Sequence record: MW825358.1
DNA length: 64,000 nt
Reading direction: 5' to 3' (one strand)
In this document: piece after piece, positions 2,663 through 36,221 of the stretch
Layout of the letters: every line of letters begins with the position of its first letter
Position numbering within the stretch: the stretch's first letter is position 1
Position numbers and translations under genes: made by a program
The notes under the pieces: model-generated
What the model was told of the DNA's origin: nothing
The model's input: the letters and a program-made list of their open reading frames with translations, nothing else
Database searches by the model: none

Positions 2663-3283
2663 ATGCCAATCGTGATTGATGGCGATGCGCGTACATTCCG
2701 GGCGGCCGCATACGGTCGTCCGCATGAAGGCACCGTCCGATTCCTCCAGCGCCAGTTTGAAGATCCGTCCTTGGCTCTCCGTGTGGCCGACACCTCGTTC
2801 TTAGATCGAGCCCGGGCCATGTTCGATGACAACTATGGCGATGAAGCCATGGCACGCATCGAGGCCGTGCGGAACCGACTGCGCCGCAGTTGGAATCCCA
2901 ACACGATCTTCCGACTGGAGACAGTGGAAGAGTTCCAACAAGCCAATCCGCTCATGCAGCGTTGGGTCATGGCACAGCCCTTTGTCCGTCAACAGTTCAA
3001 GCGTGGCGCTGTCTCTGGCTACTTGGGCTCGTATGTGGACTTGGATGCCAAGTTCTCCGGCAAGGACCATTACGACTGGCGTCGCGCCATGTCGGGCATG
3101 GCCGTGTATGACGATGAGAATGGCTGGCTGGCCACCACCTACGGTGATGAGGAGCTGGAGGGCGATGAGCCCTTGTCCTTTGAGGACAAGCTCCATATCC
3201 AAGATACCTGGGAAATGGCTGAGTACTACCTGATGAGCGGTAAGCGCGACATCACCTCCCCTGCGGATGATCCCTGGGGTTAA
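2663..3283 (+). CDS. Conserved jumbo-phage protein; by synteny possibly phiKZ gp59 (Imp3)-like
   Basis: 206 aa, AAGGA RBS, position downstream of the beta'N gene. The gp59 identity rests on synteny only. Confidence 0.5.
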   Translation: MPIVIDGDARTFRAAAYGRPHEGTVRFLQRQFEDPSLALRVADTSFLDRARAMFDDNYGDEAMARIEAVRNRLRRSWNPNTIFRLETVEEFQQANPLMQRWVMAQPFVRQQFKRGAVSGYLGSYVDLDAKFSGKDHYDWRRAMSGMAVYDDENGWLATTYGDEELEGDEPLSFEDKLHIQDTWEMAEYYLMSGKRDITSPADDPWG

Positions 3284-3292
3284 TGGACAGCA

Positions 3293-3345
3293 CCCGGGAC
3301 CCTTCACAGGGGTCCCGGGCATGACCGCTGCTTCTTTTCTTTTTT
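3293..3345 (+). terminator. Intrinsic terminator
   Basis: CCCGGGACCC...GGGTCCCGGG stem followed by a T-rich tract. Confidence 0.75.
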
Positions 3346-3367
3346 GTCTTGACCTGAGATCACCGTC

Positions 3368-3784
3368 ATGTCGGAACCGGTTGTTCCTTCGCTATCTCTG
3401 GCCGGTTTCGTTACCGATATCCGAACCCAGATCGATAAGCTTTTTTCCTATTACTTGACCAGTGACTATTCCCAGACCACCATCTTTACCGGTCAGGTCT
3501 TGTCCCTGCAAAAGCACATCCAAGAATTCCAGCACGACAATTCCCAGCTGACCGAGCGGGTGCGTGCGGATCTGTCCTCTTATCTTGGCAGCATCTCTGA
3601 TGATGTCACAGTGCGGGTCAGTACCGATATCCCCAACCCAGATGATCCGAACCGTACGAACTTGACCATCGAGGCTTTGGTGGTCAAAGATGGGGTCACC
3701 TACAGCGTGGGTAAACTGATCGAGGTGCAAGACACCACGATTTCCAAGATCATTGAGTTCAACAATAAAGGTCTGGTTACATGA
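3368..3784 (+). CDS. Conserved jumbo-phage protein, possibly gp25-like baseplate wedge fold
   Basis: 138 aa; size and helix-then-strand pattern. The fold call is tentative. Confidence 0.45.
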   Translation: MSEPVVPSLSLAGFVTDIRTQIDKLFSYYLTSDYSQTTIFTGQVLSLQKHIQEFQHDNSQLTERVRADLSSYLGSISDDVTVRVSTDIPNPDDPNRTNLTIEALVVKDGVTYSVGKLIEVQDTTISKIIEFNNKGLVT

Positions 3785-12866: not shown

Positions 12867-13472
12867 GTGGTGAGCACAGCTGAAGCGATTAAGATGAGTA
12901 AGACCAATTCACCCAACTATCCCCGTTGGTACGCCATGGTTAGGCGATGTACAGATCCTAACTGCAAGGAATATCAGTATTACGGTGCCCGCGGTATTCG
13001 TATCTGTGACAGATGGATGGTGCTAGAAAACTTTGACGCTGATATAGGTACGCCACCTTCGCCCGACCACACGCTCGAGCGCATTGACGTGAACGGACAT
13101 TACGAGCCAAACAATTGCTGCTGGGCTACCCCTAAAGAGCAGGCTCGCAATCGTAGAAGTAATGTTCTTCATGAACACCAAGGTCAAAAACGTTTTCTAG
13201 ATGACTTGGCTGAAGAGTACGGACTTCCTAAAAGAACCGTTATCGACCGGATGCGAAGAAAAGGAATGCCACTTTCAGAAGCACTAACTCAACCGAAAGC
13301 AGTGGAAGTGGCTTATTTGGAAGTAGGTGGTCAAAAAATCAGGCGAACCCAAGCCTTACGGTCCGCCGGTATTTCCTTGCCAACGTTCTTAAAACGACTT
13401 GACCAAGGAATGACCACTGAGGAAGCATTAACGACTCCAGTTGTAATGGGTCGTCCAAGGAAAACTAAATAG
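12867..13472 (+). mobile_element. Free-standing HNH homing endonuclease with C-terminal HTH-like repeats
   Basis: YGARGIRICDRW, TLERIDVNGHYEPNNCCWATPKEQARNRR; AT-richer codons than neighbouring genes. Confidence 0.88.
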
Positions 13473-15963: not shown

Positions 15964-17901
15964 ATGAGAATCCATGCACGTGATTTGGCTGCGATGCCAA
16001 AGGAGAGGCTGTGGAAGGGCCTCCCAGCTTCTTTGACCATTGTCTTTGACGATGGTGAGGTCAAAGCCGATCAGCGTCAGGCGGTCTTCTCGGCGTACTT
16101 GTGGGGGTTTTACAACCACTTCCCCAAAACACCGGCTCTGACGCGACACTTCATTGGCACACAACGGGTGGGGACGGATACCCACCTGAAGTACATCAAC
16201 ATGGTGCGCTGGGATGTCTTTGATGCCCACGGCCGTGATCTGGACAATGAGAAGCTGAGCAAGCTGGCGTTGGAGGAGACTAATATCTTCTACAACGTCA
16301 TGACCACCAAGCTTGAGCCGTTTGTGACCACCTTGGCCCTTCCCGATATCGTGGAGGTCCTAGAGCACCCCTCGGTGATCGAAGTCAACGGGGCGGTGAC
16401 AAACTCAGACAAGTCCATCCACCATGCTCACCACACCATCGAGGCGGTTCTCAAATCCAAGACGGACTTGCAGAACAACATCTTGGCCCGCTCGGTCAAA
16501 TCCGGTCTGGTCAAGATTGGTCAGGTGCTTCAGTGCGTAGGTCCACGTGGGTCGGTGACAGATATCGACTCGCAGATCTTCTTGTTCCCCGCTCGCTCGG
16601 GGTTTGCGCTGGGGCTGTATCGGTTCTATGAATCCTTCATCGAATCGCGCACGGCGGCCAAGTCGCTGACCTTTACCGAAAAGCCGCTGCAAGATACGGA
16701 GTACTTCAACCGTCGCTTGCAGTTGCTGGCCGGTACCATTCGCGATATCTACGATGGCGATTGTGGTACGCCAGACTACCTGCTGTGGCAAATGTCCGCC
16801 GGTGATCTGTCTGCGTTCTCAGGCAAGTACTATCTGCAAGAGGACGGGACGTTGGGGACGATCTATGACAATGAAGAATGCCGAAAGAATCTGGTGGGTA
16901 AAACCTTAAGGATTCGCTCGACCCTGCATTGTGATACGCCCGATCCGGCCTTGGTCTGCGCCAAGTGCTACGGGGAGCTGGAACGCTCGATCCCTTATGG
17001 CACCAATATCGGTCACGTCGGGGCCACGGCCCTGTGTAAGCAGGCCTCCCAGCAGGTGCTCTCGGTCAAGCACTTGGATACCTCAGCCAGCTCCACCGGA
17101 CTGCGGTTCTCCGACTATGAGCAGCGGTATGTGCGCATCGGCAATGACCCGAACCTGATCTTCCTGGCCCCGCGTCTGAAGGGCCATAACGTCAAGTTGT
17201 ATGTGCGCTCTGATGAAGTAGAGCGTCTGGCAGAAGTCAAGTCGGCTGAGAAGGTCGAGGTGCTGCTGTCAGGTCAGATCAGTCAGCTCAACCAAGTCTG
17301 CTTTAAGGTGACCTACAACGGCAAGGAAGAGCAAGATCTGGTGCAAGTGGCCAACGGCAGTCGTACCAGTTCCTTCTCCAAGGAAATGCTGGTATACCTG
17401 CGCACCCATGGCTGGAAGATGCTGGACAATGGGGACATCGAGGTGGACCTGGCGCAGTGGGATTATGATCTTCCGATCTTCTCCACCCCACGTCGTCAGG
17501 AAAACATGCTCGATTACATGGCCACGATCGAGAAGTTCCTCAAGGCCATCAAGCGCGGCGGTTCGGTCAAGTCCCTCAAGGACTATGATACGGTCGATGC
17601 GGCCTTGCGTGGGTTTTACGAGCTGGTCAGTTCGCGGCTGTTTGTGAACATTGTCCACCTGGAGTTGTTGGTGAAGGTCTGCCAGATCCGCTCGTCCAAG
17701 CATCGGGATTATCGACCCCCGCTGCGTGGGAACAAGATGGAGTACGGTAAGTTTGACTTCAACATCTTCCACCGCTCTCAGTCTGCGGCCATGGCTTTCC
17801 AGAACCACAAGCAACAGTGGAACAACCCGGCCACCTATCTGGTGACCAAACGTCCGTCCCATCCGCTGGATCAGATCATGCTTCCGCTGCCACGGAAGTA
17901 A
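15964..17901 (+). CDS. nvRNAP beta' C-terminal subunit (phiKZ gp74-like)
   Basis: ESRTAAKSL...YFNRRLQ bridge helix, DCG...RSTLHC...CAKCYG zinc site, QQVLSVKH trigger loop. Confidence 0.92.
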   Translation: MRIHARDLAAMPKERLWKGLPASLTIVFDDGEVKADQRQAVFSAYLWGFYNHFPKTPALTRHFIGTQRVGTDTHLKYINMVRWDVFDAHGRDLDNEKLSKLALEETNIFYNVMTTKLEPFVTTLALPDIVEVLEHPSVIEVNGAVTNSDKSIHHAHHTIEAVLKSKTDLQNNILARSVKSGLVKIGQVLQCVGPRGSVTDIDSQIFLFPARSGFALGLYRFYESFIESRTAAKSLTFTEKPLQDTEYFNRRLQLLAGTIRDIYDGDCGTPDYLLWQMSAGDLSAFSGKYYLQEDGTLGTIYDNEECRKNLVGKTLRIRSTLHCDTPDPALVCAKCYGELERSIPYGTNIGHVGATALCKQASQQVLSVKHLDTSASSTGLRFSDYEQRYVRIGNDPNLIFLAPRLKGHNVKLYVRSDEVERLAEVKSAEKVEVLLSGQISQLNQVCFKVTYNGKEEQDLVQVANGSRTSSFSKEMLVYLRTHGWKMLDNGDIEVDLAQWDYDLPIFSTPRRQENMLDYMATIEKFLKAIKRGGSVKSLKDYDTVDAALRGFYELVSSRLFVNIVHLELLVKVCQIRSSKHRDYRPPLRGNKMEYGKFDFNIFHRSQSAAMAFQNHKQQWNNPATYLVTKRPSHPLDQIMLPLPRK

Positions 17902-28694: not shown

Positions 28695-28735
28695 CGACAT
28701 AAGCCCCTGCCCATAAGGGCAGGGGCATTATGACG
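28695..28735. terminator. Bidirectional hairpin flanked by CATA/TATG
   Basis: GCCCCTGCCC-ATAA-GGGCAGGGGC. Confidence 0.75.
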
Positions 28736-28876
28736 TTGATGGGTACGTAACCCTAACCCCGGATAGAGGTTTCTTGGTGACCATGGACTGGTATTTAGAC
28801 AGTCGTGGGTCGTTGGAGTTGAAGGCCGCTAGTTAGGACCGGGTGTGCTCCACATGGTTACCATCACCGTAACAAT

Positions 28877-28933
28877 TTACGTGAAGCACGTAGCTAGATC
28901 GAGTTCTTCGGTCTTTAAGGACTTACCGTGCAT
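28877..28933 (-). pseudogene. Displaced duplicate of the last 18 codons of the vRNAP beta' gene
   Basis: Encodes MHGKSLKTEELDLATCFT*, versus in-frame MHGKSLKTEELDLETCFS* at 28933-28989. Confidence 0.88.
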
Positions 28934-30234
28934 CAAGAAAAACAAGTTTCTAAATCTAATTCTTCTGTTTTCAAGCTTTTTCCATGCATGGCAGCCATGA
29001 AAAGCGACAAGAAGGTCGAGCCGATGTCCGAGGCGTAAGTGCCTAAGGCTTGCGGGGTGGAGGCAATGCGCTCACCCATGCACTTGGCACAGAAGTTTGC
29101 ACCGCTCGTCCGGCAATACACTGGCGAGCGTACCAACAAGGTCTGACCCACCAAGCCCTTTAAGGACTCTTCGGTCAACACCACAGGCTGACCTTTCTCG
29201 ATCCGGTAGTTACCCACGTAATGGGGCGCCTTGTCCTTGGTCATCAACACCGTCAGTCCCAACTTAGAACCACAATCGTCTTCGGAGACTTGCGAGTTCT
29301 GGAAGATACGGTTGTTGAACTTGGTTTCCACGCCGCCCAGTGCGGTCTGTGCACCACGTGAGAAAGAACCATCGCGCAGCTGGTTGACCATGGCCGGTAA
29401 CTTGGAGATATCCCAAGCCTCATCTAGCGAGGTCGGGATCAACTCACCTTGGACACCAAAGCCTGCACTGATGCCCTGCATGATGAACACCTTCAGGCGC
29501 ACCACGTCGTAGGACTTGTCCTTGATGTAAAAGCGCTCACCTGGATCGCCTTGCATCCACTTGCGATCCATCTTGGTCAGCTCATCCAAGATATTGGCCA
29601 GCACCACTGGATCATGCAGACGATCCTTGTTCTGGGCCAACAACTCATCACGGCGCTGGATCATGGCCGGGTCTGCGGTCATGGTCTTGCGCGTGGCAGA
29701 CGGCACACACAGCTGAGAAAACCCAGGCAGCTGACCGACAGCTTCACTGAAGAGCTTGTACTCACTGGTGCGAATGGGCCGGGCCTGCAACGGAAGCTTT
29801 AAGGCTTCTTCCTCAGGCATCGTGTCATCCCAGCGATCTTGAATCTGCTTTTCGATCGTTCCGATCTTGACCAGACCGGTCATAAAGCCGATCTTGCCAT
29901 GGAAGGGATGATTGAGGATCAGTTCGTTGACCAGGGCATTGCCGTAGGTGGTCTCCACCCGTTCGGTCACATTGGTCATCTGGCCAGGATTGAGTACCAG
30001 CTTTTCTAAGGGACGGAACAAGGGCTCACCGGGCATGGCGTCCTCAATGACCTCAAAGCCCTCATCATACTCCTTGCTGTAGCACGCATAGCGACCATCG
30101 GGCAAGGTAAACAAACCAAACGGGTAAGGATGCTCCCCACCCGGTCGGGTAATGGAGAACGCCTCAAGCACCCAGCGCTTGTGGAGGTAGTTCTCATTGC
30201 CCATGCAGATCAGAAAGTAATCTTTCTTGAACAT
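28933..30234 (-). CDS. Virion RNA polymerase beta' middle subunit (phiKZ gp80-like)
   Basis: GSFSRGAQTALGG bridge helix, DDCG...RSPVYC...FCAKCMG zinc site, LFMAAMHG trigger loop. Confidence 0.88.
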   Translation of the reverse strand: MFKKDYFLICMGNENYLHKRWVLEAFSITRPGGEHPYPFGLFTLPDGRYACYSKEYDEGFEVIEDAMPGEPLFRPLEKLVLNPGQMTNVTERVETTYGNALVNELILNHPFHGKIGFMTGLVKIGTIEKQIQDRWDDTMPEEEALKLPLQARPIRTSEYKLFSEAVGQLPGFSQLCVPSATRKTMTADPAMIQRRDELLAQNKDRLHDPVVLANILDELTKMDRKWMQGDPGERFYIKDKSYDVVRLKVFIMQGISAGFGVQGELIPTSLDEAWDISKLPAMVNQLRDGSFSRGAQTALGGVETKFNNRIFQNSQVSEDDCGSKLGLTVLMTKDKAPHYVGNYRIEKGQPVVLTEESLKGLVGQTLLVRSPVYCRTSGANFCAKCMGERIASTPQALGTYASDIGSTFLSLFMAAMHGKSLKTEELDLETCFS

Positions 30235-31611: not shown

Positions 31612-33306
31612 ATGAGTAACGAGAACAATCCGACCTCTCAGGATGAGAGCTTTGTCGAGAACGATATTCCTCTGCCCCATGAGGTCGCCCCGGTCGCACC
31701 TGTTGCCGAACAGACGCCCGTTGTCGAGTCGATCATTGATCCGATGGTGTCTGGGACTGATGAGGCAGCGTGTTTTGAGGTGGACGAAACGCTAGACGCG
31801 CAGGCCGCGGCTGAGGCAGCCATCAACCAGATCGACGAAGAAGACGGTTATGCCGTATTCGTGCGGCGCGGTGTCAACCCCCATGCTGAGATGTCCTTTG
31901 ATCCGAGCCGACCGCTGGATCCGCGTCGCCCCTGGCGTCCGGGTGAGCATCTGAGCGTGGTGCCTTGCACGGCCGAAGAGTTTAACCACCTGGTGCAGAA
32001 TGTGGCCCGACTGGACCCGACCGGTTCAAAGACCGGTGCGCAGTGGACCCAGGCCGTCTATCAGGGTCAGGAAGTTATGCCGCGCGGTAACGCACTGGCC
32101 GGTGCGGTGACCCGTGAGACCTCTCTGTGGCGCCAAGGTGTGACCACCGGTGGTGAGGGAACGATGGACCTGATGGCAGGGCGTCCGCGCTTTGGTGAGC
32201 AGAACCAGCACAAGGCCTTGGTAGGTGATGAGGCAGTGCAGTACATGCAGGCCATGCTCGGCACCGGTCATGTCACACGCGTACCGCTGTGGCACTCCGG
32301 GATCTGGATCAACCTCAAGGCCCCGTCTGAGCAGCAGCTGCTGGAACTGGAGCGTCGCATTTCCAATGAGAAGATCTCTTTGGGTCGGGCCACCAACGGG
32401 TTGATCTTCTCCAACACGATGGTCTTCCACAACAGCTTCCTGTTCAACTTTGCCTTAGGGCTGGTGTTTGATTGCTCCATCAGCGCATTTACCACCGAAA
32501 CGCTTAAGCGCAAGATCCTGCTCACTGACCTGCCCACCTTGCTGTGGGGCTTGCTGTGTACGATCTACCCCAACGGGTACAAGTATCACCGTCCGTGCGT
32601 GAATGATCCTTCCAAGTGCACCCACGTGGCTGAGGCGATACTGGATATCATCAAGCTGTGCTGGACGGACAATACGGCCTTGACCGAAGCCCAGCGCAAG
32701 CACATGGTGCGCAAGACCGCCAAGTTCACGGATCTGGAGCTGTCTAACTATGTCAGTCAGCACAGCTACAACAGCAAGGCCACTGTGACTGTGCGTGATG
32801 TGGATGGTATCAAGACCACCGTCCAGCTGCGCGTGCCGACCCTGGCAGACTATGAACAGTCTGGCTTTAACTGGGTCGAAGGCATTGTCACGGGCACGGA
32901 TATGGCCTTTGGTTCCCAGCTGGGTGGTGAGGAGCGCAATGACTACATCATGGAACAGGCCAGTGCCACCAGCCTGAGCCAGTACGCCCACTGGGTGGAG
33001 CGTGTGAACTTCAACAACGGACTGACCTGGGTCGATGACCGGCAGACCATGGAGAAGATCATCGGCCAGCTCACTGGCGATACGCGTGCCTCGGAGTCCT
33101 TCTTGGAAGGGATGCGTGCGTTCATCAATGATGCCACCATTTCGTTGATTGCTATCCCCTCCTACAAGTGCCCAGTCTGCCAGCATGATCAGAATGATCC
33201 GGAAGAGAAGAAGCATCCGCATCTGATCCCGATCGACATTGGCACGATTTTTTTTATCCTTCTCGGCCAACGCACCCAGCTACTGCTCAATTCGGCGATC
33301 TTGTAA
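31612..33306 (+). CDS. phiKZ gp77-like protein; putative tail/baseplate assembly chaperone (gpG or T4 gp26-like)
   Basis: 564 aa; CVNDPSKC and CPVC Cys pairs; ends ...GTIFF over a T8 run. Confidence 0.55.
   Translation: MSNENNPTSQDESFVENDIPLPHEVAPVAPVAEQTPVVESIIDPMVSGTDEAACFEVDETLDAQAAAEAAINQIDEEDGYAVFVRRGVNPHAEMSFDPSRPLDPRRPWRPGEHLSVVPCTAEEFNHLVQNVARLDPTGSKTGAQWTQAVYQGQEVMPRGNALAGAVTRETSLWRQGVTTGGEGTMDLMAGRPRFGEQNQHKALVGDEAVQYMQAMLGTGHVTRVPLWHSGIWINLKAPSEQQLLELERRISNEKISLGRATNGLIFSNTMVFHNSFLFNFALGLVFDCSISAFTTETLKRKILLTDLPTLLWGLLCTIYPNGYKYHRPCVNDPSKCTHVAEAILDIIKLCWTDNTALTEAQRKHMVRKTAKFTDLELSNYVSQHSYNSKATVTVRDVDGIKTTVQLRVPTLADYEQSGFNWVEGIVTGTDMAFGSQLGGEERNDYIMEQASATSLSQYAHWVERVNFNNGLTWVDDRQTMEKIIGQLTGDTRASESFLEGMRAFINDATISLIAIPSYKCPVCQHDQNDPEEKKHPHLIPIDIGTIFFILLGQRTQLLLNSAIL
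33247..33256 (+). other. Candidate -1 programmed ribosomal frameshift site (T TTT TTT)
   Basis: ATT TTT TTT ATC; the -1 frame has no stop from here into ORF 33333-33773. Confidence 0.6.
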
Positions 33307-33332
33307 TCAATCAAGAAAGTCAGAACGGGCAC

Positions 33333-33773
33333 GTGCTCTTTCCCGGCTTTGGAGTCGAAAAAGCCAAAGACCTTGCGCCAGTCAAACAACTGGCCGAGGT
33401 CATGCGGACCGCCGAGCGCAAGACCTTAACCCCGTATGAGAGCCAGCTCTTACTGCGGGAAGCCTATGATGACACCTTTGGGATTGCCAAGCACAGTCAA
33501 TCGCGCAATCCCATGTCATTGGTCAGTGTCCAATCCTCAGAGTTGATTGGACCTTTCAGCAGACAGTATCGCTTGTACAAGCGTTTTGCCACCTTGGACA
33601 TTGGTAAACTGTTTGGCTTAAATATCACCGAGTTTCTCCAGCAGCCGCGGGAGATGATCGAATTGATGTTTGCCATTGCTGAAGAACGCACTCAGATTGA
33701 GAACCGTAACAATGACCGTGCTGAAGCCGCCTTCCAGCGTAGCTTGGACAGCGGGAGAATGCCTGCGGTTTAA
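33333..33773 (+). CDS. Probable T-part of a frameshift fusion, or a separate small protein
   Basis: Lies in the -1 frame of 31612; GTG start with weak RBS; LFGLNITEFLQQPRE resembles tail-chaperone T domains. Confidence 0.6.
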   Translation: MLFPGFGVEKAKDLAPVKQLAEVMRTAERKTLTPYESQLLLREAYDDTFGIAKHSQSRNPMSLVSVQSSELIGPFSRQYRLYKRFATLDIGKLFGLNITEFLQQPREMIELMFAIAEERTQIENRNNDRAEAAFQRSLDSGRMPAV

Positions 33774-33788
33774 CCGATTGGAGATCGC

Positions 33789-33911
33789 ATGATCGTCTAT
33801 GAAGGTCCCGGCAACTTATTTGAGTGTGGGGTACAAACCATCACGTGCAGTGAGAGCGGGAGGCAATGCCTCCCGCTCTTTTTATGGTTCCGAATAAGTT
33901 CACACCCTTAA
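33789..33911 (+). pseudogene. Orphaned original 5' end of the macrodomain gene
   Basis: GGAG RBS; MIVYEGPGNLFECGVQTITCS matches MIIYEGPGDLFSCGMQCITCS at 34723 (16/21 aa), then runs into a terminator. Confidence 0.88.
33853..33883 (+). terminator. Intrinsic terminator at the edge of the HNH insertion
   Basis: AGAGCGGGAGGC-AAT-GCCTCCCGCTCT-TTTT. Confidence 0.85.
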
Positions 33912-33958
33912 TATCAAATTGAGAAGGACTGTCAACCTTTTACAATTAAGGGAAACAA

Positions 33959-34726
33959 ATGAGAATTGATGTTACCGGCCAGCGTTTTGGACGATTGGTG
34001 GCTCTTAGTCACCGCCAGGTCGCAGTGGGGAATCGCAAATATATTCGCTGGCTTTGCCGGTGTGATTGCGGTAATTTGACAGAAGTACTTCTGTCAAATC
34101 TCAAAAATGGCAACTGCTCTAGTTGCGGATGTCTTAGTAAGGAGCGAGTTGCTTCTTTAAATAAGACACACGGAATGTCAGGCACAAGGGAGTATGCGGC
34201 ATGGGGCGCCATGATCTCACGATGCCACAATCCCAATGCTCAGGCCTTGGATAATTACGGCGGACGGGGAATTTCAGTTTGTGAGCGCTGGCGCAGCTCC
34301 TTTGAGAATTTTTACAATGACATGGGCCCTCGCCCCTCTGATGAACACTCCATCGAACGCCGCAACGTCAACGGTAACTACGAACCGGGTAACTGTTACT
34401 GGGCCACTGCCGATGTTCAAGCCAACAACCGACGGAACACCCTGTATGTTGAGTACCTAGGGGAAAGACTCACCGTAATGGCCCTTTCAGAGAAAACGGG
34501 GGTTCCTTATCAAAAGCTGTATGAAAGGATCTATCGGTTGGGGCAGTCGGTTGAAGAAGCCATCAGACCAGATCAAGAAGTGAAGTTATACGAAGGGTTC
34601 GGTAAGAAACTTAGTCTCAAGCAATGGGCGGTGGAACTCAACATGAACTACTACACGCTCTACGACAGGTTCAAAACCCACGGCTCGATTGAAAAAGCAG
34701 TAAAGAAACCTGTGAGGTCCAGATGA
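33959..34726 (+). mobile_element. Free-standing HNH homing endonuclease
   Basis: RIDVTGQRFGRL, CRCDCG, SCGC, YGGRGISVCERW, SIERRNVNGNYEPGNCYWAT...QANNRR, with C-terminal HTH-like repeats. Confidence 0.9.
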
Positions 34727-35181
34727 TCATATACGAGGGACCGGGAGATCTATTCAGCTGCGGCATGCAATGTATAACTTGCTCGATAAATACTGTCGGT
34801 GCGATGGGAAAAGGGATTGCATTGGAGTTCAAGCGTCTAGTGCCAGGGCTGTATGAATACTACCGCCAGCACTATCATGATAAACCTCCACTGTTTCCCA
34901 GTGTCAATAAAGTGCTAGTCTACAACGTCGATGCCGAGCGCAAGGTGTTGTTACTGCCCACCAAAGACCACTGGGTATATCCTTCCAAAGTAGAACTGAT
35001 TGATCGCAATTTGCAGGTGCTCACCGAAACCTATCGGGAGCTTGGAATTGAATCCCTAGGACTGCCGTTGATTGGCTGCGGCCATAATACCGGACAGCTT
35101 TCCTGGGAGCGTCAAGTTCGACCTTTGGTCTATCAGCACTTGGATCCCTTACCGATCCCTGTAAAGATCCTGACAGGCTGA
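34723..35181 (+). CDS. Macrodomain ADP-ribosylglycohydrolase (DarG/Appr-1-p-like)
   Basis: GDLF, INTVGAMGKGIALEFK, PTKDHW and LGLPLIGCG motifs. Confidence 0.88.
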   Translation: MIIYEGPGDLFSCGMQCITCSINTVGAMGKGIALEFKRLVPGLYEYYRQHYHDKPPLFPSVNKVLVYNVDAERKVLLLPTKDHWVYPSKVELIDRNLQVLTETYRELGIESLGLPLIGCGHNTGQLSWERQVRPLVYQHLDPLPIPVKILTG

Positions 35182-35220
35182 CATAGACCCCCGCCCACAA
35201 GGCGGGGGCTTATGGCGTCG
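35179..35220 (+). terminator. Hairpin flanked by CATA/TATG
   Basis: CCCCCGCC/GGCGGGGG stem. Confidence 0.7.
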
Positions 35221-35230
35221 ATTCAAGGGA

Positions 35231-35257
35231 ATTTGAGAACTATATTAACTTAGTGAA
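35231..35257 (+). promoter_or_regulatory. Putative early (vRNAP) promoter
   Basis: ATTTGAGAACTATATTAACTTAGTGAA matches copies at 53819 and 54884 and resembles the phiKZ early TATATT core. Confidence 0.65.
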
Positions 35258-35291
35258 GTCTGTCTCAATCAAATCCTCTAGGAGCATTACC

Positions 35292-35846
35292 ATGCAACAA
35301 CAAAGCTATCGCCTTGACCGAAACGATCGCAATCCGCGTCTCCCATATGGCGATCTGCTTTGGGAAGGCACGGTGAGCCCCAGTAAAGCATTTGCCTCGC
35401 TGATCATCTACGAACTGGGCTATGGGGGAACGATCACTGAACTGAGCGAAACCAAGCTCATCGTTCAGACCTGCGTGATGTCCAAGATCGACCATGTCGT
35501 CTTTGAGGGCACTAAGGAAGAAATGGAGCCGCTGCTGCAGTACGTGGCGATCTTCCATCAGCTTTCTTCAGAAGATGATATCGGCAGGATCTTCGACGCC
35601 TTGGAAGGTACTGCGCTGAAGGAAAAGCTCCTGCGGCCTTTGTACCTCACCACCGCCGGGATCATGATGGTGGGCGGCAGTCGTGCCCATCGAGCCATGA
35701 TCGGGTTTTTGGTGGAGAAAGAAGGACAGGTCGAGCAGCTCAGTCAGTACGATCTCAAGGACCTGGTCGCCCTGGGCCAGCTGGTCATCGAAGGGGCCAG
35801 TCGCAGTGAAGCCATTGCCACCCTCGATACTGTCGTTGAGGCTTAA
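35292..35846 (+). CDS. Hypothetical early protein
   Basis: AGGAG RBS before ATG 35292. Confidence 0.7.
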   Translation: MQQQSYRLDRNDRNPRLPYGDLLWEGTVSPSKAFASLIIYELGYGGTITELSETKLIVQTCVMSKIDHVVFEGTKEEMEPLLQYVAIFHQLSSEDDIGRIFDALEGTALKEKLLRPLYLTTAGIMMVGGSRAHRAMIGFLVEKEGQVEQLSQYDLKDLVALGQLVIEGASRSEAIATLDTVVEA

Positions 35847-36221
35847 ATGGCCGCCAAGAAGTCAGCGGCCGTGTTGGCCGTGCAGATGTGTGATGCGGTG
35901 ATGGCCTTGCGGGTATTTGGTGATAACAACAGTGTCTATCAGACCCGTTTGGAGAATGAGATCTCCAAACGGGGTTGGCGCATGGATGAGGCACGGATTG
36001 AAAAGATCCGCTCTGAGATGCATCAACGCCAAGCTGAACTGGATAGCCTAATGGCCAAGTTGCGTCAATGCCTGACTGATTTTGGTACCATCACTAAAGC
36101 CGAAGAGAAAGCTTTGGGATGGTACTGGGATGAGGCCACCGTGATCCGCGATAACTACAATGCCCGTGCCCGGGACATCACCGCCAACCTTCCCACCTTT
36201 CATCAATTCCGCCCTCGCTAA
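35847..36221 (+). CDS. Hypothetical coiled-coil protein
   Basis: 124 aa, abutting the upstream stop. Confidence 0.7.
   Translation: MAAKKSAAVLAVQMCDAVMALRVFGDNNSVYQTRLENEISKRGWRMDEARIEKIRSEMHQRQAELDSLMAKLRQCLTDFGTITKAEEKALGWYWDEATVIRDNYNARARDITANLPTFHQFRPR

Follow-up and report, generated by a model that had tools for sequence, protein, structure and literature searches.

Why should a phage gene possess two beginnings, one stranded in front of a nuclease gene and the other fused to the remainder of the coding sequence? The question is raised by a macrodomain gene of Xanthomonas phage vB_XciM_LucasX (MW825358.1, 305,651 bp), a phiKZ-like jumbo phage whose host is X. citri. The stretch analyzed here, referred to as the window, comprises 64,000 nucleotides (nt; bases 62001-126000 of the record), and all genes in it are labelled hypothetical in the deposited annotation. 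Coordinates are those of the window unless stated otherwise. The answer put forward is that an intron-free, self-rescuing homing cassette of ~935 bp (33852-34785) lies between codons 21 and 22 of a DarG-like macrodomain gene, a reading that is given a probability of roughly 0.8. As read from the sequence, the cassette begins with a hairpin and a downstream TATG, continues with a short leader and the free-standing gene of an HNH-like nuclease, and ends with a ribosome-binding site, a start codon, and substitute codons 1-21 for the gene that it interrupts.

For the comparison with relatives, 5.8 billion proteins were searched with the LucasX nuclease, and the contigs of the matches were then looked up. 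The genomes of LucasX, RTH11, and G001 (a jumbo phage of 324 kb from IMG/VR) were assembled from 20-kb pieces. A search for RNA runs that contain the LucasX sequence gave none.

Architecture of the interrupted gene

The old head of the macrodomain gene begins with an ATG at 33789 that is preceded by GGAG 6 nt upstream, and it extends over 21 codons to 33851 (MIVYEGPGNLFECGVQTITCS), the last two being TGC AGT. A G+C-rich hairpin of 13 bp follows immediately (33852-33880, −26.6 kcal/mol, z −5.1) and is continued by TTTTTATGG. The open reading frame (ORF) of the nuclease has 255 codons (33959-34726); its start in the deposited annotation is placed 72 codons too late. The TGA of this ORF overlaps the ATG at 34723 (ATGA), an arrangement that may couple translation of the macrodomain to that of the nuclease. 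From this ATG the new head (34723-34785, MIIYEGPGDLFSCGMQCITCS) continues in frame as a 152-residue Macro-domain ORF (PF01661) that ends at 35181. The two heads agree in 16 of 21 residues and in 37 of 63 nt, and 12 of the 15 degenerate codons that they share are changed. An earlier reading of this stretch (the original prediction) had described the same order of ribosome-binding site plus 21 codons, terminator (the hairpin above), nuclease gene, and second start; all of these elements are present at the positions then given, and its counts of residues and codons are confirmed.

Cassette-free and cassette-bearing relatives

The uninterrupted allele that had been postulated exists in RTH11 and in G001. 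In RTH11, 13 nt separate the homolog of the upstream gene from an unbroken macrodomain gene of 152 codons, whose product is 70% identical in protein to that of LucasX; the old head of LucasX therefore occupies the normal start position of the gene. The macrodomain gene of G001 is likewise uninterrupted and has a hairpin at its 5′ side, the stem of which is almost equal to that of the LucasX cassette. Five further loci carry a nuclease homolog directly upstream of the macrodomain gene, with 63-74% identity to the LucasX nuclease. A stranded head between the upstream gene and the hairpin is found in four metagenomic lineages (L068, L072, L073/L074, and L075), and in L068, L073, and L075 it consists, as in LucasX, of exactly 21 codons ending in TGCAGT. 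In L072 the old head has decayed: codon 21 is a TAG, and 13 additional bases precede the terminal TGCAGT. L070 has hairpin, nuclease gene, and macrodomain gene with no stranded head. Presence/absence polymorphism is seen directly in these loci: by their sequences, G001 (nuclease absent) and L070 (present) form a presence/absence pair with bodies that are 91% identical in nt and 98% in amino acids, and RTH11 stands in the same relation to L073/L075.

The association of duplicate and nuclease was assessed in 123 related macrodomain loci, 114 of which had been added from metagenome and viral contigs, each being scored by the best upstream match to the gene's own head (BLOSUM62). The nuclease occurs in six of the 123 loci, and none of the 114 added loci has one. 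Five nuclease-bearing loci score 77-96, and no other locus exceeds 28. The head duplication is far beyond chance, and head duplicates are limited to nuclease-bearing loci.

The five loci with a stranded head share one break point between codons 21 and 22, TGCAGT/ATC (the slash marks the break). Native alleles read ...CAR ACN ATC NNN TGY AGY / ATC AAY ACN GTN GG..., where ATC AAY ACN GTN GG is the start of the conserved INTVGAMGKG motif. The corresponding new-head junctions in the cassettes of LucasX, L073, and L075 read ...CAA TGY ATA ACN TGC.... An equivalent of the ribosome-binding site (GAGG or GAGA) precedes the macrodomain start in L068, L070, L072, L073, and L075. The relatives thus bear out the proposal that a nuclease cassette, with no intron, broke the gene after codon 21 and brought along a replacement head.

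Ancestry of the two heads and movement of the cassette

The two heads have separate ancestries, which are best seen in L073 and L075. Their macrodomain bodies place them in the clade of RTH11 (82% identity in nt, 93% in amino acids). The old heads of L073 and L075 differ from the RTH11 head at 14 and 12 of 63 nt, respectively (78-81% identity), which fits the 18% divergence of the bodies and marks the old head as native. The new heads differ from it at 20 and 23 of 63 nt (63-68% identity; P = 0.006 and 0.0004). Across host lineages, the LucasX new head shares 18 of 21 residues with that of L075 and 17 of 21 with that of L073, the differences being mostly synonymous (17 nt but three residues between LucasX and L075), and a cysteine at position 17 is common to the three new heads and occurs in no old head. 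Since so few residues are changed, and start codon and GAGG are kept in all cassettes, the new head must be a translated sequence under purifying selection. By these comparisons, the old heads go with the host lineage and the new heads with the cassette.

The cassette also behaves as a block. In the flanks (2.8 kb on the left side, 2.9 kb on the right), L073 and L075 have 98-100% identity, which falls to 65-86% between position 2802, in the old head, and position 3703, 15 nt past the new head. Within this block the hairpins differ, and the nuclease genes are 76% identical in nt. Against a background of 2%, there are seven differences in the 63 nt of the old head (P = 3e-4) and nine in the new head (P = 5e-6), and the co-conversion tracts have lengths of ~57 nt (left) and 15 nt (right). 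Read from the alignment, this pattern is a classical homing footprint in which the cassette has moved as a unit, and near-identical flanks around divergent, bounded cassettes point to a recent exchange.

The changed codons bear on whether the substitute head was recoded, as the original prediction had it. The 12 of 15 in LucasX compare with 8.6 expected from independent draws on LucasX codon usage, and the four other cassettes have 10 of 13, 8 of 12, 4 of 11, and 9 of 13. Between the macrodomain bodies of LucasX and RTH11, the corresponding count is 59 of 92. Synonymous change is at saturation, as it is between any two alleles that are ~75% identical in protein. A recoding beyond saturation was considered and is unproven (P = 0.055 for the head, 0.044 for the tail described below, and mixed results in the other four cassettes). 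Recoding is indistinguishable from the import of a diverged allele; a long-diverged foreign allele would fit as well as selected recoding.

Proposed mechanism and alternative explanations

In a mixed infection, the nuclease would cut cassette-free alleles at or near the conserved TGCAGT/ATCAAC. The break would then be repaired from a cassette-bearing genome, in which the native head and the upstream gene (LUCX_95) would provide homology on the left and the gene body on the right, and repair would copy the cassette in together with short co-conversion tracts on both sides. The native head would remain as a dead stub 5′ of the hairpin, and translation of the macrodomain would begin at a start codon of the cassette that overlaps the nuclease stop or lies next to it. 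As the cassette head differs from native heads just 5′ of the junction, the new junction would be protected from re-cutting, and the divergence of the heads would also lower recombination between them. A homing mechanism of this kind is well supported by the comparative footprints.

Several observations weigh against this reading or narrow it. Between distant lineages, the divergence of the nuclease is about that of the host gene, and long vertical co-descent would therefore explain much of the distribution. Recent mobility is demonstrated within the RTH11-like and G001-like clades only. LucasX has no close cassette-free relative, and its old head is taken to be native because it is syntenic in position and because the RTH11 clade offers an analogous case. 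In addition, the nuclease copies of L073 and L075 may be decaying, some of them possibly being inactive.

The identity of the nuclease belongs to the same side of the balance. It had been called an HNH gene, and the PHROGs families that it matches do carry the name HNH endonuclease (phrog_374, 1.6e-70; phrog_3377, 4.2e-59), as do AlphaFold DB clusters of the family, which are automatically named HNH or AP2. The protein has no match in Pfam (even at E ≤ 10), NCBIfam, or the sequences of the PDB, and a Foldseek search of its structure model against the PDB gave no match. The model (predicted local distance difference test score 90.9) has an N-terminal Cys-rich β domain, a central ββα region, and C-terminal helical domains. 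Its ββα element is placed at residues 130-155 (strands 130-134 and 146-150, helix 151-155); H130 is kept in 27 of 33 family sequences, and N145 and N157 are invariant. An exhaustive structure aligner put the HNH restriction enzyme PacI first among solved chains, a weak match with a Z score of 6.0 only. In the model the H-N-N motif is plausible and the nuclease fold is weakly supported, so that the protein is called HNH-like here; the case for homing behavior comes from the population evidence and not from the fold.

Among the alternatives, the one that survives best, though distinctly unlikely, is a single ancient vertical insertion after which the old head was selected as a leader ORF or as a regulatory site, such as an operator for the nuclease. 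Autoregulation via operators that resemble the homing site is known for I-TevI, and the rough parallel between nuclease and macrodomain gene divergence in distant lineages would follow without homing. The old heads, moreover, keep their start codon and Shine-Dalgarno sequence, and the differences between those of LucasX and L068 are mostly synonymous; this synonymous excess, however, is equally expected if the old heads worked as gene starts until a recent invasion. A selected leader ORF also fits poorly with the ORF after codon 21 ending differently in each lineage and with the head of L072 being already broken. RTH11, nested beside L073/L075, is cassette-free with an intact head, and the 65-86% identity of the L073 and L075 cassettes between near-identical flanks requires the recent exchange that a purely vertical history lacks.

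Next in order, and very improbable, is a one-off recombination scar, in which a tandem duplication or an illegitimate join with a relative having an intergenic nuclease produced the structure with no mobility as a unit. The break point and architecture are the same in five diverged lineages, co-conversion tracts bound the block in L073 versus L075, and the new heads share cassette-specific residues across host lineages, all of which speak against it. A plausible progenitor is nevertheless at hand in the G001/L070 arrangement of hairpin, nuclease, and macrodomain gene without duplication. The LucasX hairpin is closely similar to that of the G001/L070 lineage, and exactly such a structure would arise once if the left junction had been end-joined at the cut site. 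The scenario explains the first origin of the cassette well, but not the distribution seen today.

A group I or other self-splicing intron, with the old head as exon 1 spliced to codon 22 and the second head incidental, is scarcely credible: although the reading frame would be kept by a join of 33851 to 34786, a T precedes the break and a G ends the putative intron in the manner of group I introns, and related jumbo phages do have group I introns with nuclease genes (as indicated in PMC11620839), no Rfam family matches 33000-36000 at E ≤ 1 and no ribozyme core is recognized there, the non-ORF bases around the nuclease gene number only ~107 and 59, the second head is constrained as protein with start codon and Shine-Dalgarno sequence kept in six lineages, the L072 old head with its in-frame TAG and 13-nt insertion cannot be an exon, and L070 combines a cassette with an uninterrupted macrodomain gene and no old head at all.

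Probable transcription punctuation at the cassette

The homing cassette opens with a hairpin that resembles many others in the genome. TATG, which has been reported as a late-promoter motif in phiKZ-type phages, is found within 14 nt 3′ of 107 of the 208 G+C-rich hairpins of LucasX (background 2.5%). The usual form is hairpin-TTATGC, often on both strands of one hairpin, and examples in the window lie at 28703-28726, 33853-33879, and 35188-35208. The combination also occurs at the examined loci of G001, RTH11, and the metagenomic relatives. Homologous hairpins are present in all six loci with the homing endonuclease gene (HEG) and upstream of the macrodomain gene in HEG-free G001, and all other cassette hairpins are of the hairpin+TATG type as well. 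The combination looks like a genome-wide terminator-plus-promoter punctuation, and the cassette hairpin, as a member of this set, represents the normal transcription-unit punctuation of LucasX. The original prediction saw in it a terminator that silences the old start; it is probably a terminator, with transcription restarting at the TATG, and not merely a silencer.

The old-head ORF retains its Shine-Dalgarno sequence and ATG and is open through the hairpin to a stop at 33909-33911; transcripts terminated at the hairpin would consequently be non-stop messages. A leader block of ~30 nt is common to LucasX, L068, L073, and L075 and may be a promoter or 5′ untranslated element, and the leader of L070 and L072 is short.

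The invaded gene and other copies of the nuclease

The macrodomain protein matches the DarG antitoxin macro domain (NF048014, E 1e-28), below the equivalog cutoff because the protein is the macro domain alone, and homologs occur in 247 phage records. The invaded gene thus looks like one for a DarG-type DNA ADP-ribosyl glycohydrolase, and from this resemblance its product may serve in counter-defense against DarT-type DNA ADP-ribosylation; the gene is probably not essential. The G+C content at third codon positions (GC3) is 0.54 in the macrodomain body, 0.53 in the nuclease gene, and 0.61-0.76 in neighboring genes. The value of the body might reflect a long co-conversion tract in LucasX or a weakly expressed gene. 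An import of the entire macrodomain gene with the nuclease, which GC3 had suggested, was rejected, as the body in the RTH11 clade is clearly native after codon ~26.

Further copies of the nuclease family are found in G001 (at least six) and in LucasX (one), none of them with flank duplicates. The LucasX copy (12867-13472) is 36-37% identical, lacks the N-terminal domain, has a GC3 of 0.43, and sits 76 nt upstream of an 802-codon gene with no flank duplication. When flank was scored against flank, values of 70 and 74 were obtained where the ORF sits between two copies of a gene end, and at most 35 for the eight others. The eight other copies in LucasX and G001 without duplicates imply that the arrangement is not general to the nuclease family.

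In both L073 and L075 the nuclease gene (3001-3621) encodes 206 residues, the last ~50 residues with the C-terminal helical domain being absent, and its stop lies 4 nt 5′ of the macrodomain start, with no overlap.

Related cassettes in LucasX and G001

A second duplicated gene end lies in the window at 28877, in a gene (30234..28933, minus strand) that is the homolog of an RTH11 gene annotated “RNA polymerase beta subunit”. Here it is the tail that is duplicated: the two LucasX tails are identical in 16 of 18 residues and differ in 12 of 15 codons, and their mean relative synonymous codon usage is 0.74 in the inserted and 1.13 in the native copy. The single tails of RTH11 and of L190, a closer relative, have the codons of the downstream LucasX copy, which is therefore native, and the in-gene copy is the inserted one. 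G001 contains the complete form (80918-81865), in which the inserted tail is followed by a nuclease gene and then by the native tail at an ATGA overlap. The nuclease of this cassette is a 264-residue GIY-YIG/NUMOD1 protein (PF01541, 2.4e-9). In LucasX no nuclease gene lies between the two tails, and the locus is accordingly a scar from which the nuclease ORF was lost and both tails were retained.

The original prediction had regarded the macrodomain cassette as the complete form of this scar. The link is right in kind; the scar is a 3′-end version, and its complete form has an unrelated nuclease of the GIY-YIG type. The further claim of that prediction, that clean loss of the nuclease would be difficult, is qualified by the scar at 28877, which shows that a nuclease gene can evidently be lost. 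Between the native RNA-polymerase tail and the terminator there is a non-coding stretch of ~150 nt (28727-28876, minus strand) with a long inverted repeat (GGTGACCATGG...CCATGGTTACC), and a spacer of like length is found at the same place in RTH11, G001, L190, and L191.

A third variant lies ~11 kb past the end of the window (record 137,105-137,811; L011 17105-17811), where a tRNA gene is split by an HNH gene and a tRNA-Thr(TGT). The acceptor halves of the two parts of the split tRNA are complementary, and by its layout the locus is a nuclease cassette in which the replacement part is a complete tRNA gene. Together with the G001 tail, it substantiates the predicted recurrence of an intron-free strategy. 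In a genome-wide screen for nearby peptide duplicates, no nuclease-associated match was found beyond the macrodomain head and the G001 RNA-polymerase tail; the filter of this screen (no gap, no overlap) misses the LucasX tail scar, which was added by hand. The other matches were rejected as tandem paralogs, namely tail-fiber-like genes, small gene families, and tRNA genes read as protein.

It is tentatively suggested, at somewhat less than even odds, that jumbo phages harbor a general and as yet undescribed natural home-and-rescue class, in which unrelated homing nucleases inserted in conserved genes would carry a diverged replacement head with expression signals, a tail, or a whole tRNA, the divergence being selected to block self-cleavage and deletion by recombination. 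The features of all three LucasX loci are collected in Table 1.

Table 1. Positions of the features discussed (window coordinates, except the last row, which is given in coordinates of L011)
Feature	Position	Strand	Remark
Upstream gene LUCX_95	33333..33773	+	Syntenic in RTH11, L073, L075; L073/L075 98-100% identical here
Old (native) macrodomain start	33779..33851	+	GGAG Shine-Dalgarno 33779-33782 and 21 codons 33789-33851
Cassette left end: hairpin, T-run, TATG	33852..33889	+	13-bp GC hairpin 33852-33880
Conserved leader block TTCNNACCCTTAMTAT...	33898..33928	+	Common to cassettes of L068, L073, L075
Nuclease gene, 255 codons	33959..34726	+	HNH name from PHROGs and AlphaFold DB clusters only
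GAGG Shine-Dalgarno for new macrodomain start	34714..34717	+	Inside last codons of nuclease gene
New (cassette-borne) head, 21 codons; cassette right end	34723..34785	+	ATG overlaps nuclease stop
Macrodomain gene body, codons 22-152, DarG-like	34786..35181	+	Right homology arm
Inserted replacement tail of RNA-polymerase subunit gene, 18 codons + TGA	28933..28989	-	A/T-shifted codons
Displaced native tail, 18 codons + TAA	28877..28933	-	ATG overlaps TGA of the gene
Split-tRNA locus on L011	5′ part ~17105-17133; classical HNH gene 17145-17684; tRNA-Thr(TGT) 17687-17769; 3′ T-arm/acceptor part 17782-17811

Comparison with known systems

Duplicated gene tails that accompany a nuclease are known from fungal mitochondria, where mobile ORFs (mORFs) make gene hybrids of an inserted C-terminus, an endonuclease ORF, and the displaced native C-terminus (PMC3630166). 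Examples are atp6, atp9, cox2, and nad3 of Glomus (Beaudet et al. 2013, PMC3630166) and atp6 of Allomyces (Paquin et al. 1994, as cited in PMC3630166). As in the phage loci, the endonuclease gene is free-standing and moves together with a substitute for the gene end that it displaces. The native stub is the copy that resembles close relatives (in the phages, the RTH11 clade in the case of the head and RTH11 and L190 in that of the tail), and the inserted copy has diverged strongly in DNA but stayed similar in protein. The RNA-polymerase tail, complete in G001 and a scar in LucasX, has exactly the mORF layout. The macrodomain cassette differs in that it replaces the 5′ end, with the nuclease upstream of the rescued gene, and for this reason it also has to bring punctuation along with a ribosome-binding site and start codon. 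The nucleases differ as well, those of mORFs being LAGLIDADG or GIY-YIG enzymes of fungal mitochondria and that of LucasX an HNH-like protein of a bacteriophage. The 5′-end, phage-borne, HNH-like form appears to be new; no description of the same arrangement for gene heads or in phages was found in the open-access literature, which is not proof of its absence.

T4-like phages possess free-standing homing endonucleases of the Seg and Mob types, for which intronless homing with co-conversion of flanks is established (PMC2988022). They share with the LucasX cassette the presence/absence polymorphism, gene conversion with co-converted flanking markers, and signals for a neighboring gene that are embedded in the nuclease gene and favor its retention, host promoters within nuclease genes being described in the same review (PMC2988022). 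T4-type elements, however, are intergenic or divide a gene so that two polypeptides result (Aeh1 nrdA, T4 gene 60, gene 43), whereas the macrodomain gene remains whole thanks to the duplicate end that the cassette brings. Duplicated gene ends are not described in that review of T4-type mobile elements (PMC2988022). Introns, inteins, and the “fractured genes” with split inteins, in which a nuclease is inserted into coding DNA (as outlined in PMC2677866), likewise place a nuclease gene in a conserved coding target and preserve the function of the host gene. They do so by splicing, whereas the LucasX cassette restores function in the DNA itself through a replacement gene end. After RNA splicing, protein splicing, and gene splitting, this would be a fourth solution that lets a selfish nuclease gene reside within coding DNA.

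For annotation, such cassettes explain short “recoded” duplicates and stubs in phage genomes as footprints of past invasions. RTH11 versus L073/L075 and G001 versus L070 provide natural pairs for the study of homing, co-conversion, and target immunity in nucleus-forming jumbo phages. With a DarG-like gene as the target, the cassette may also shuffle alleles of a counter-defense gene between phages.

The last parallel is an engineered one. The original prediction compared the element to a cleave-and-rescue drive, and the rescue logic is indeed the same, since in such drives and in HomeR, a synthetic home-and-rescue gene drive (as outlined in PMC7968924), a nuclease directed against a functional gene is combined with a re-coded portion of the same gene that resists cleavage. 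HomeR is the closer of the two, as the footprints indicate homing (copying through gene conversion). HomeR is engineered, whereas the LucasX cassette is natural, protein-guided, and viral, and its target gene is probably non-essential. As a natural counterpart of home-and-rescue drives, the cassette illustrates both their persistence and their decay, the latter in the truncated nuclease of L073/L075 and in the loss of the nuclease at 28877.

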